Origin: Orbicella franksi
Lineage: Eukaryota
Length of the DNA stretch: 64,000 nucleotides
Assembly (NCBI GenBank): GCA_964199315.1
Contig: OZ116700.1
Span: 9,176,001-9,240,000 of the forward strand
Direction of reading: 5' to 3'
Position 1 is the first letter of the stretch; every line of letters starts with the position of its first letter. Shown here piece after piece: positions 34,965 to 43,900 of the stretch. The notes beneath the pieces were generated by a model. It saw nothing but the letters and a program-made list of their open reading frames with translations. It was not told the DNA's origin and did not search any database. Position numbers and translations under genes: made by a program.

Positions 34965-37900
34965 TCAAATGACCTCTTCTAAGGAATCACGTGATCCACG
35001 CCCACTGTGCGCATCATTCCTATCGTGCACAGGGTCATTCCTATTGTCACGTGAATGTCCACGTTTTGAACACGTGCTCTCCTCGTGCTTTGACGGTGAA
35101 ATGCTGTCGTTTGTTTCTGGCGGGATCTTGATTTCTAATGTCCTTCGCCTTCGCCTTCTAGCTCCTTTTTCTACTTTCCCTCCTTTGGTTTGCTTCTCTC
35201 TATTGGCTTGCTCTTTTGTGGAGCTCGATTCAAGGTTTAAAACTCCAGTTGAAGATGATCGAGATGGAGGCTTAGGCGAGTGAGTGTCCTTCACGCTACA
35301 ACTTATCTTCAGAGCAGAGTTGTGCCTTTCCTTGACACGTTCTCCGTGTTCCTGTATCAAAGATAATTTGACGCCTTCAATCGACGCGTCATGTTTCAGA
35401 GGGGAATTTAGTGTCGCAGGTGGCAAGCGAGATCTCAACAACAAACTTTCAGGGGTCTTGGAGAGCTCCGCCTTATCTTGTATTTCCACAAGCCGACCCA
35501 AAGTATTGTTTATACTCTTGAGTAGTTCTTTGCCTCCCGTTGTAGCAATTGAATGCCGTTGACTAGGAAGCCGTTTGTCGGCGGACGGTGAGCAATAAAC
35601 ATTCCTCCAGGTTTGCGCATGCCTAGTATCTGGTGCATTGTACTGAGCATGATCACGTGATCGGTCTTCATTAGCACGTAACATTAGTTCGTCTTTCTCG
35701 TCTTGAGCCTTTATCGCTGTTAATTGGCAACATAGCCCGTAAGGGGGCAGTGAAGGTGGATCTTTGGTCTTTCGCTTTGCCTCCGTATAGGAAGAGGGCG
35801 TGTTGAAATGGAATGGACTGGGAACCGGTTGTCTGGGCTGATTTGCTCCCGGGCTCCTAGACGGAAAGTAGGAATGCGGAAGAGAAAATCTTCTGTGGTT
35901 AAAATTGACCTGGAAATAAAAATGATCGCGTTAGCAGGCATAAACGATATCCCTCCCTGAGTAAGGTTATGGCTGAGTATGGCGAGTAAACATGTTCACT
36001 TGCAAAACTGCCAACCCTTATACAGTCGAACCTCTATTAACTGCCCCCCTACTAAGCGACCATCCTTTATTTGGCGGCCAGCGGGCAAAGTCGCGGAAAA
36101 AGTTTCAGCTATGCAATGTAATTAAAACTTCTATTCAACGGGCAGCGGCGGCCAGCTTCTTGCCTTCCCAAGGGTGCTTTTGTTTTATTTTATACCTCTT
36201 TTAAACGGCCAGGAAGATTTGAAGTTGGCCAGATGACGGTAAAAGAATGACAATGTGGAATACTGTTAAAACACATTTTCAGCACTATTTAATTAAAACA
36301 GTCACAACAGTTTGTTTGTATAGCAGACGAGCCAGTGTTGGGTTGACAGACACATCGCGTCCATGCACATCATTGTTTCTTTGGCTTTTGTTAATATTAT
36401 GGACCGTATTATAACCATCATTGTTCTACTTTTTCTCCACTTGCATTTGTTTGTACTTTTATTTGATAAACTGAAAGCTGGACCACGCCCAACGTTATTT
36501 TCGGGTGAACCTCTATTAAACGGCCACCTCTATTAAGCGGCCAGTTGTCTCGTCCCCGAGAGTGGCCGCTTAATAGAGGTTCAACTGTATATAGATTTAG
36601 CCAATCCTAAAAGCGGAATTAACGCCTGTGCGGTTTCTTCAAAGCCCCGCTAACCAAGGACAAGCGAGAATTATGATTGGAGTTTTGTAAATCTGCGATG
36701 AGGTTTTATGTTTATATTGTTTGGCTTATTGTTTTGAAACCAAATAAAACATAAGCAGTGAAAAGCATTTTTATAGAGGAAAAATTTATACTTCGGTTAA
36801 CTGTCAATGATGGGTCGGTGTTAACCGCCTTCCGAACAACTCGGTCCTGATTGCGGCAAGTTAACATGGCTCGAACCCGCGATCCAATCGAAAACCCGCA
36901 CTTGGTCAGCGGTCACATTTAGAAAAACATGTGACCTCGATAAGCTTGTAATTTGGAACGGCGATATGGTAACGGATAGCTCGTTTTGACAGGTGTCAAT
37001 TAACCTTAAAATGGATGTCCAAAATCAGAGACGTACGCTATAAACCAAGACTCCAAGGCCGCGTGTCTCGGTCAATCATGTTGCGCGACGCCGTCGTCGC
37101 GGTCGTGCGTGCTCGCCCTCAAGAAATACCGCTAGCCATGATTACCATGAGAAAATCAATTCATGGGTTTCCTTTTCTTTCCTGTATGGGCATGGTGCTC
37201 CGCTTAGCGGGTCTTCGGGCAGCCGGAGCTCGGCTATTAGAGTTTTAGAGGCGGCCGTTTTGGTTTCGTTTCCCAATAGGAACAATTGTTTAAGGCGCAA
37301 ATGGGTTAGCTGTAATGTCCCGAGAGAAATTCTCTTCTCTGTGGTTAGCAAAGCAGACTCTTTTAGCAAAATTCTAAAATACCTCTCGAGGTTAGCACTA
37401 AAATGAAAAAATGCGCACAATCAATAGATTTAAGCCGGATGAAATGGATTCCAACGCTAAGACGGATTATCTGTCTGCGTGCGCCTCAATGGCAATGCGT
37501 GTCAGTATAAAGTCAGGCAGAGGACGGTTAATTCGTTGACACGAACTATCCACCTTTGTACATCTTGAACGTCGAATTGAGAACTCAGAGCGTTTTACAC
37601 CAGACGCATAAAACAGCAGACGCCTACTCCGTCAAATACCAGGAGCAAAAAGAAAAGAAACGAAAAGAACATCTGAATGCAAAAGCAGACATTATCTTTA
37701 AAGGGTTATCGTCAGACAAAATGTTTAGCAGTTAACCGCGACACAGTGGCTGTTGAAAGCTGGATGGGGTTTTATGTATTTGGGGAAGACAAAATTTGGG
37801 TTGACAAGTTGTAAGTCCAAAGTTTCCCCACAATATCTTAGTTTACATATCAACAAAGTAGCTCAGTTTGGAGCACTCATCGTTTCACTAGTTACCAGGA

Positions 37901-40900: not shown

Positions 40901-43900
40901 AGCCTTCAACTTCGGCTGATAGCCCCTACCTCGACCTTGATTATTCTGGATATCACAAAAACCAAATCTAACAATTGTTTATCATTATACATTGTAGTCA
41001 CCATCTGTCTTCTCATTGGCTAAAAGCCTACATTTAATGCTGGGAAACAGCGCAACCTACAGATTAGTGAGTAATCCGTAGGTTTCGTGCGCAATGCATG
41101 ATTTCCGAGAGCAATGTCAAGTTCACGTAAGAACGTGGCTTGTCGAAAATAAACTGCGTTCGGTGCGATAATGCGTTTGTCGTTATTTTCTGATACAATG
41201 TATAACAAAACAATTATGAGATTCGGTTTTTGTGATATCCGAAATAATCAAGGTCTCGGTCAGTGTTATCAGTCTCAGCCTTCGGCTGCGGCCGATAACA
41301 CTTACCTCGACCTTGATCATTCCGGATATCACAAAAACCTCATCCAAGAATTGTTTACAATTTTACGCGATTAATTTTCGCGCGCTTAATTTTCACCTAT
41401 CTTCACTACCTGGAAATTAAACTTCTCTGAAGACAAAAGACAACAGGATTCATCTGAAGCGAACAACAAATACATTCTTTGTAATTACCTTGTCGGGTGA
41501 ATCCAGTTTCATTTGCTGTAACGGGATGGAAATGATCTTTGCATTTATGAGAGACACTTTGCCTATCGATGGCGTGTTGGCTCGTGAATGTCTGGGCGAG
41601 GACCCGGCGTGTTTCGTCTCAATAACACGTCGAGGAGACCCTACGCGGGTGTTTACCGTATTTTCTTTCCTTTCCTGTTCATTTTGCTCAGTGGATTCTT
41701 TGTCGACCGTAGCTTTGCTTTCGATCAAAATATGCGACAGGTTCATGGATAACTTCCGACCATTCACTCCCGCAACTTCCACTGAAGCATAGTTGCACGA
41801 CGTCTTTCGGGAAATTTCAATGCCCGCGTCACTTAAAACGCTACAAGTTCGGTCTTTTTGCTCGCCAGAAGCATCTCTATCGGTTTCGCTTTCTAACTTC
41901 TTGGATATCATATCACCTTGAATATTGCGGGCATTTTCTAAAAGATCCCCGTCAAGTTTGGACAAATTTTCTTGGCTTAGAGAATGAAGCTCTTTCCGAC
42001 CAGCGGGAACCGTTAAGTTCTTCGTCTCCAAACCTGATTCATTCGAAGTACTTTCCTGTTTATCGTTAAAATCACACGCCTTTACTGTCGCAACTTTGCA
42101 TTCAGCTCTCTTTTTAATCGCATTTTTATTTTCCTTATCTTGTGAAGCACCTCGCGAGTTCCGAACGGACTCGGAATTGTTCGTCTCGAACTCGGAATTG
42201 CGCGTTACGTCGTTCATGGTGCGTTCAGCTTTTCTAGGATGCTTGATGTAGTACCGTCTTAGTTTCCTTTGTAGAAGATGGTACACAGTTGATGTCGCGG
42301 TAGACCTGTGAAAAGGGAATAGACACAATACGAAAGGACAGTGTTAGAGAATACTTCCGTTTTAGGTGCAACTTAACGTTAAAGCTTAAGGACATGCATT
42401 GATTTGGTAATATTTGCCGACACGATTGACAATTTTGATCAAAGAACATGCGATTATAAAAGGATCATAGAAATCCTGTCTTTATCCTGTGAGCTAGGGT
42501 TAAAGCTTTTCGTTTCCCATAAAAACTAAGAGTTAGGCCCAGTTCAGGCACCGCACTTTCCATGAGCCGAACAAAATACATTGAATTAAGTACATGCATG
42601 AAAAGTTCGGCGTTTGAATCAATTAACAACGGCTATTTGAATTTGGAACGGCCCAGCCGTTCTTCCCGCCTAGCTCAGCCGGAAATTTCGGCTTTGGAAC
42701 GTAGAACTTTTTATGAGCCGAACCTAATGCATAAATTATTATGACGTATTTTACAAGCAGTTTTCACTTTGCCTGAAAGTCGCTGACATTTCGATGTGAT
42801 TTGGTTTAATTAAGTCCGGTAAAGTTCGGCGAAGTAAGTTCGACGTCAGAATCAATAGGTGTACTTTTGATAATTTGAGTCGGTCCAAATTCGAATTAAA
42901 TTCGGCTCAAGAAAAGTTCGGCGTCTGAACTGGGCCTTACTCAATTATTGGGATTAATTAAAAAGGGGTAAGGATTAGAACCGGGAAATTGAAATCTTCA
43001 CTGCTTTCCCAAATCCGACCAAATTTCTCCCCTAATGTGATAATCTGCATTGCAATTCATTAGATAATGGAACTGGTTCACATATATATCCAGCGACTCT
43101 GAAAGGTTACTTTCGACATTTTAATTCTAGCCTGGTTGCGGGGGCACCGACCTAAAAGTAACTTAGACATCAAATCGAGGCTCAGCCTCGTCTTGGCGCA
43201 TCTGTCCTCAGCGTGCAGCAGATACTGAGGCCAATACGATAATGCATAGACCCTTTGCTTAAATGGCGCCCAAATTTGAATAACAATACTTATACATCTA
43301 AAGCGTCACAATCATGTGAAATATCCTTTGTATGGAAACATAAATACGAAGCTAAGGATGTACAAAGTACAGTGGAACCCAGCCTTACGGCCACCCCGTT
43401 AATACGGCCACCTCGTTATTACGGCCACTTTATTCTGGCCCGAACAAAGCTTAGTCAGTTATTTTCTTATTTAAAGAACCCCTTTAATTTAATACGGCTA
43501 CCCCGTTAATACGGCCAGTGTTTTTTTGTGGCCCGTTGGTGAACGGATTAACGAGGTTCCACTGTATTGTCATTCAATTTGAGGCGCCATTTATGCAAAG
43601 GGTCTATTTTGGTGGCAGGGAAGCGTTTATTCGATATTGGATTTTGAACCTTCTAGCAGCAGATGTCTTGTACATTAAGTGAATAATTGTTCCAGCTATA
43701 GCCACACTGTAATAAGAAGGTTAAACGATTCACTCGTCTCCGTGCGGAATTTCTCATCTTCTTGAGGCAGATAAGAATTTTAATTACCGGTTTTGTGTCA
43801 CAGCTTCAAATATTTCTTCGTGCTTTGAATCCATCTTGTCCACCATGTGCCGCAGTATATTTTTGTCCAGCTCTTCATCCCGCGGATAATTCGGGAACAT

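Follow-up and report, generated by a model that had tools for sequence, protein, structure and literature searches.

When an intron of one gene harbours a second gene in the same orientation, can the host still be spliced past its guest, and what becomes of the host when the guest has paralogues close by? The question is raised by a locus of the stony coral Orbicella franksi, which we analysed in a window of 64,000 nucleotides (nt; NCBI GenBank assembly GCA_964199315.1, contig OZ116700.1, positions 9,176,001 to 9,240,000 of the forward strand; coordinates below are those of the window). Its minus strand carries a gene for a HUNK-like protein kinase and, near the 3' end of that gene and beyond it, an array of Kelch genes named here, in the direction of transcription, K5 to K1. 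An initial annotation made from the letters alone had proposed that the kinase continues past K5 to an exon at 35909, and that the nested Kelch gene seeded the array as part of a repeat unit. The account developed below combines a nine-exon kinase that is spliced across the same-strand nested K5, a frameshifted state of K5, and a history of crossing-over between K5 and its downstream paralogue K1; taken as a whole, we regard it as highly probable.

The last kinase exon is spliced across K5

A splice-aware model at GT-AG sites resulted in nine exons on the minus strand that encode an open kinase of 947 amino acids (aa), 866 residues of which are identical in the coral protein P0067. The initial description of the borders of the last intron was accurate: exon 8 ends with GACAAG at 41489 and is followed by the donor GTAATT, and the acceptor TTTTTATTTCCAG, followed by GTC at 35909, opens an uninterrupted frame of 314 codons that runs to a stop at 34965 on the minus strand.

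When RNA contigs of this species were aligned to the window, one joint touched the acceptor at 35909. It was placed from 35907 to 41487, skips 5579 nt and reads CT..AC on the plus strand, which after shifting the cut by +2 corresponds to the junction of 41489 with 35909, as had been predicted. Three contigs carry the joint, each from a different run and a different study (X2, 2926 nt; X1, 2185 nt; X10, 4750 nt), with zero mismatches over 164 + 208 nt, the shorter side of 164 nt being the edge of the compared stretch. Among the listed joints, none connects K5 or any other site to this acceptor, so that the alternative considered at the outset, an exon spliced to a different gene, found no counterpart in the contigs. 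The junction sequence was absent from the genome DNA (497 Mb, 805 contigs searched), in which exon 9 has only two copies, both within the window. This excludes a retrocopy or contaminating DNA as the source of the joined form.

A phmmer search with exon 9 against 1.8 billion representatives led to P0034, a continuous open reading frame (ORF) of 786 aa from the run of another coral, found on an intron-free Logan contig of 3,452 nt. Here the kinase domain, an exon-8-like and an exon-9-like segment follow each other, and at the border DSSDK is directly continued by VKLPQRRFSLPQS; the equivalent in the window begins with DSPDK. Exons 8 and 9 are also adjacent in six further coral proteins of 611-958 aa (P0064, P0065, P0066, P0067, P0068 and P0069), one of which is an annotated Oculina patagonica protein, and the expected presence of the 314-aa exon in coral homologues was thus borne out. 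The exon 9 sequence is present in 14 RNA runs, and its ratio of nonsynonymous to synonymous substitutions (dN/dS) against four orthologues is 0.13-0.24, low values that place it, to judge from the substitution pattern, under purifying selection. Taken together, the junction contigs, the transcripts of relatives (P0034, P0067) and the synteny described below show that the HUNK-like kinase indeed has its last exon at 35909, spliced across K5 to exon 8.

Two of the junction contigs have lengths, 2,926 and 4,750 nt, that suggest near-full-length mRNAs, whose 3' untranslated region (UTR) may extend more than 1 kb into the spacer following exon 9. Judged from the same lengths, the segment 32925-34800 is probably in large part kinase 3' UTR. 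Contigs that run from exon 8 into the last intron exist as well (P0001); intron sequence from further upstream is also part of them, and their source may be either DNA or pre-mRNA.

As to the identity of the kinase, P0067 contains one protein kinase domain (Pkinase, E 7e-75), and no KA1 domain was found in it by the domain search. With a mammalian HUNK it shares 51% identity in an alignment of 360 aa (E 1e-125) that extends beyond the kinase domain on both sides. Outside Cnidaria, HUNK homologues were among the best-named matches, while some hits, several of them from invertebrates, bear automatic 'MARK2-like' names. On these similarities the coral kinase is likely orthologous to HUNK. The resemblance to this AMPK-related kinase covers the N-terminal region, the kinase domain and the post-kinase segment, and the coral protein differs from vertebrate HUNK by its long C-terminal tail. 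This tail of about 570 aa, encoded by most of exon 8 and all of exon 9, was conserved only among stony corals in our searches and showed no detectable similarity to vertebrate HUNK. A Pfam search of exon 8 and of the 314-aa exon 9 matched no family, and the products of both exons are probably coral-specific, disordered tails.

K5 within the last intron

K5 lies wholly inside the intron 35910-41488, and its ORFs and Pfam domains are on the minus strand, as is the kinase. Position and strand are as initially described. K5 does not, however, form a continuous ORF: close to 39556, where the BTB domain ends, 25 nt are missing, and the gene is thereby split into a 114-aa BTB ORF (39548-39892) and a 509-aa BACK and Kelch ORF (38025-39554), so that the three domains do not share the single reading frame that they have in K1, in K4 and in the orthologue of a close relative. 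The deletion is seen relative to all four paralogues K1-K4 and to both Kelch genes of that relative. Because RNA contigs span 39377-39664 without gaps, across the deletion site, it cannot be attributed to an assembly slip.

Contigs specific for K5 matched it with 0-3 mismatches over 168-556 nt, the nearest paralogue being 84% identical. The RNA word depth over K5 was 15-100, compared to 0-4 in the unique intron bins 37292-37689 and 40277-40475, and it was similar to or higher than that of the kinase exons. The contrast in depth favours K5 being transcribed by itself over an origin of this RNA from the kinase pre-mRNA. Since the frameshifting 25-nt deletion is also present in the RNA, the most likely state of K5 in this genome is that of a transcribed pseudogene.

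In run X1, an RNA contig of 1,238 nt fits the 3' end of K5 only at 37933-38135 and then departs from the window sequence, close to 37941, where the similarity between K1 and K5 ends. The departure could mean that the graph switched to a paralogue here, or that K5 has an alternative 3' end.

Two further blocks of the intron, 36496-37291 and 40476-41330, showed RNA word depths of hundreds to thousands, far exceeding those of the genes, together with numerous anomalous joints. Probably they represent transposable elements with expression from many copies across the genome. The larger part of the block between exon 8 and K5 is missing from the intron of the close relative, where L010 5361-5401 bridges window positions 41359 and 40483.

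Duplications, flanks and the history of the nesting

The locus of the close relative consists of exon 8, an intact Kelch gene of 621 aa, the last exon, about 7 kb, one Kelch gene and the gene for WDCP (L016 19249-19818). K5 is the best match of the intronic Kelch gene, at 84.5% nt identity, and the last exon shares 90% protein identity with exon 9 of the window. In three more distant corals the last introns measure about 0.35, 1.2 and 1.0 kb and have no Kelch gene inside; because of these short, Kelch-free introns, the nesting can be regarded as lineage-specific. The search for an ancestral Kelch gene in this intron, proposed initially, thus gave an intact orthologue in the close relative and none in the three distant corals, so that the nesting is not ancestral to corals.

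Within the window, self-comparison revealed a duplicated block: the 3' flank of K5, exon 9 and the 3' region (37903-32925) recur as the 3' flank of K2, a decayed exon copy (21178-20144) and 19935-18112. The decayed copy, or pseudo-exon, is 82-85% identical to the live exon at the nt level. Its frame is disrupted by deletions of 14 and 146 nt and by a 4-nt insertion, and stop codons occur in all frames. In comparison with the live exon its dN/dS is 0.44, above the range given for the orthologues, and by this measure constraint appears relaxed. RNA runs contain a fraction of 0.17-0.55 of the sampled words of the pseudo-exon, versus 0.81-0.91 for the live exon. Because only 6.5% of its 31-mers are in common with the live exon, the pseudo-exon must itself be covered by some RNA or contaminating DNA.

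The flanks of the three middle Kelch genes are of mixed type. On the 5' side, K2 and K4 are 64-89% identical to K1 and 51-75% to K5, and K3 resembles K1 only within about 280 nt of the ATG. On the 3' side, K2, K3 and K4 are 68-89% identical to K5, compared to 34-44% to K1, which is the noise level. Self-comparison further showed that the K3 and K4 units comprise the Kelch gene only, without a copy of exon 9. From the two sides together we infer that the pattern is the signature of unequal crossing-over between the nested K5 and the downstream K1.

A history consistent with synteny and flanks would start from an ancestral coral in which the last intron was short (0.35-1.2 kb) and contained no Kelch gene. 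In the common ancestor with the one close relative, a Kelch gene would have been present in the intron and a paralogue downstream, before WDCP. Unequal crossing-over between K5 and K1 in the lineage of the window may then have given rise to a chimeric Kelch gene, and the same event would have duplicated the whole interval between the two parents, that is the last exon of the kinase and its 3' region. The exon copy nearest to exon 8 would have been kept in use, while the downstream copy decayed to the pseudo-exon. Finally, the chimera would have been copied again, twice without the exon, resulting in K2, K3 and K4. The array thus may have risen from two to five genes in the lineage of the window; alternatively, it may have contracted in the relative.

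How the intron acquired its guest can be approached from the extent of similarity between K5 and K1, which is confined to the coding region plus about 85 nt before the ATG and about 87 nt after the stop. These limits would also fit an RNA-mediated copy, and no poly(A) remnant that would mark such a copy was seen at K5. The nesting could also stem from a duplication of last exon, spacer and Kelch gene with later loss of the exon copy on the upstream side, and the data speak neither for nor against this origin: no remnant of exon 9 was found between exon 8 and K5 by tblastn and self-blast, and the interval between exon 8 and the Kelch gene is only about 0.8 kb in the relative.

Several points weigh against the account as a whole. 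The coding parts of K1-K5 are mosaic, and gene conversion blurs the crossover point and other details. Synonymous divergence (dS) is 0.20 between pseudo-exon and live exon and 0.23 to the relative; with values so nearly equal, the duplication could predate the split from the relative and have been lost there later. As for the RNA, the evidence consists not of raw reads but of Logan contigs, which are blind to strand, transcript ends and isoform ratios, and the one run taken as raw reads, X24, had only 9 reads placed, all in a repeat, and gave no useful coverage. The case for transcription of K5 in its own right is one of depth contrasts only; no canonical AATAAA occurs in the 180 nt after its stop codon, and neither a start site nor a poly(A) site of K5 was seen in the strand-blind contig data.

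Other readings of the same observations have to be weighed. It is extremely improbable that the joined form of exons 8 and 9 represents a de Bruijn contig artefact or processed-retrocopy DNA in the RNA libraries. Chimeras can occur among Logan contigs, and DNA can be present in RNA libraries, but the same base is joined in all three runs and studies, with canonical GT..AG borders and the frame kept, and the transcript ORFs of relatives show the same junction. A retrocopy origin was ruled out, as the genome is without the junction sequence and holds exon 9 at two sites only, without a third copy. The initial proposal for the array, in which Kelch gene, last kinase exon and spacer form a nested repeat unit that gave rise to all of the downstream genes by serial tandem copying, appears very unlikely to us. 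One full unit was indeed duplicated (K2, 20144-21178 and 18112-19935), and the 3' flank of K5 is common to K2-K4, so that K5 did contribute to the array. Serial copying is, however, difficult to reconcile with an exon 9 that occurs only twice in the genome, with K3 and K4 units that are Kelch-only, and with 5' flanks of K2 and K4 that are of the K1 and not of the K5 type. In addition, the relative already has a separate Kelch gene downstream, before WDCP, which implies that the nested copy was not the only seed of the array. The flanks point to crossing-over between K5 and K1 instead of serial expansion.

Transcription of K5 also leaves room for a working gene, the 509-aa BACK-Kelch ORF or the 114-aa BTB ORF being translated and the poly(A) site of K5 interfering with the host to give a truncated kinase without its last exon. 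We consider this rather unlikely. In its favour, the RNA depth of K5 equals or exceeds that of the kinase exons, the 509-aa ORF opens at an ATG right after the deletion, with the conserved codons for M-L-N-T-S-N, and the orthologue in the relative is intact. Contigs from exon 8 into the intron would fit interference, though they are perhaps DNA or pre-mRNA, and nested genes have been linked to, and reported to promote, premature polyadenylation of their hosts in mammals (Wood 2008, Cowley 2012 and Kaer 2011, as cited in passages of PMC11694760). A downstream ORF on a monocistronic eukaryotic mRNA, however, is rarely translated, and a KLHL protein without BTB should not engage Cullin-3. As to interference, no truncated polyadenylated kinase isoform was observed in the contig data, and no poly(A) signal or site could be mapped there. 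Quite unlikely, in our estimate, is a more far-reaching version, according to which K5 would serve as a regulated intronic terminator, its poly(A) site on the kinase pre-mRNA yielding a kinase without the coral-conserved 314-aa C-terminal exon, and recombination between nested and downstream Kelch genes would repeatedly remodel the 3' end of the kinase in this coral lineage.

Related systems and further features of the window

In mammals, nested genes account for more than one tenth of genes, and same and opposite orientations are 'broadly similar' in mouse and human, with a slight bias toward the opposite one and a preference for 5' introns (PMC11694760). The initial statement that same-strand nesting is uncommon was thus overstated. 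K5 resembles other animal host and nested gene pairs in that the unit is contained in one host intron, both partners are found in RNA and the host is spliced across; also, the kinase intron is far longer than the orthologous introns without a guest. It differs from mammalian guests, which favour 5' introns, by its place in the last intron on the same strand, and from such pairs in general by being frameshifted, by having probably recombined with a downstream paralogue, with copying of the terminal exon of its host. The domain architecture of K1-K5 and their arrangement as tandem single-exon genes are those of BTB-BACK-Kelch (KLHL) Cullin-3 adaptors in tandem arrays; here K5 and K2 are broken and the BTB match of K3 is shortened. 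Chimeric flanks and a duplicated interval between the parents are likewise features of non-allelic homologous recombination between tandem paralogues, the difference being that the interval at this locus holds the terminal exon of an unrelated host, which as a copy is decaying to a pseudo-exon.

Nesting of genes, KLHL arrays and non-allelic recombination as a source of duplications are established phenomena, and no new mechanism has to be invoked. For evolution, the locus would offer a dated example of a guest gene lengthening a host intron in one coral lineage, and an example of unequal crossing-over between a nested gene and its paralogue by which a host exon was copied and then decayed. For annotation, a last coding exon that lies 5.6 kb downstream, past another gene, means that automatic models can easily truncate the kinase or fuse it with Kelch. 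A public kinase model of Desmophyllum pertusum (P0070, 655 aa) ends shortly after exon 8, without the last exon, and is the kind of truncation that such an architecture can cause.

The features of the window are collected in Table 1.

Table 1. Kinase exons, Kelch genes and duplicated segments, in the order of transcription
Feature	Positions	Strand	Basis
Kinase exon 1, coding part, ATG at 54876	54655..54876	-	splice-aware model, tblastn of P0067/P0065
Kinase exon 2	49815..49957	-	tblastn, model, AG/GT borders
Kinase exon 3	49201..49350	-	tblastn, model
Kinase exon 4	47363..47418	-	tblastn, model
Kinase exon 5, DFG to APE segment	45893..46043	-	tblastn, model
Kinase exon 6	45001..45128	-	tblastn, model
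Kinase exon 7, end of kinase domain and post-kinase region	43788..44019	-	tblastn, model
Kinase exon 8, 817 nt, last base 41489 before the donor	41489..42305	-	sequence, RNA joint, model
Kinase last intron, 5,579 nt, GT..AG	35910..41488	-	RNA joint in three studies
Transposon-like repeat block between exon 8 and K5	40476..41330	.	very high RNA word depth
K5 transcript, approximate extent	37842..40218	-	K5-specific RNA contigs
K5 coding region, BTB-BACK-Kelch, single exon, two ORFs	38025..39892	-	ORFs, Pfam
Kinase exon 9, last coding exon, 314 codons and stop	34965..35909	-	RNA joint, homologues, dN/dS
Region 3' of exon 9 (spacer), with a copy at 18112-19935	32925..34800	-	self-comparison
K4, intact 644-aa BTB-BACK-Kelch; K1-type 5' flank, K5-type 3' flank	30529..32463	-	ORF, Pfam, flanks
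K3, 630-aa open frame, shortened BTB match; K5-type 3' flank	26740..28632	-	ORF, Pfam, flanks
K2, broken (ORFs 22536-23924 and 21981-22445); K1-type 5' flank, K5-type 3' flank, then pseudo-exon	21981..23924	-	ORFs, flanks
Decayed copy of exon 9 (pseudo-exon) beside K2, acceptor retained	20144..21178	-	self-comparison, frame, dN/dS
Copy of spacer/3' UTR region, 81% identical to 32925-34800	18112..19935	-	self-comparison
K1, intact 638-aa BTB-BACK-Kelch; last of the array before WDCP, in the position of the relative's downstream Kelch gene	15231..17147	-	ORF, Pfam, synteny

Some smaller features are not part of this set. A segment of 0.9 kb 3' of exon 9 (33282-34197) is 94.7% identical to a copy at 24805-25705, between K3 and K2, where the adjacent Kelch genes are 85% identical; to judge from these values, the copy suggests a recent conversion or a later step of duplication. 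Between K1 and the WDCP gene, at 13234-14016, three tandem units of 261 nt are found, the second and third being 94% and 74% identical to the first. The gene for WDCP (PF15390, WD repeat and coiled-coil) follows the array at 7678-11614 on the minus strand, with three ORFs that match successive parts of the family. In intron 6 of the kinase, 44094-44483 is a long trinucleotide repeat, a microsatellite rather than a gene; translated on the plus strand it gives about 22 consecutive His, and on the minus strand stretches of Val or Trp. Upstream of the kinase, on the opposite strand, a gamma-glutamyltranspeptidase-like gene occupies 60246-63161 (plus strand).

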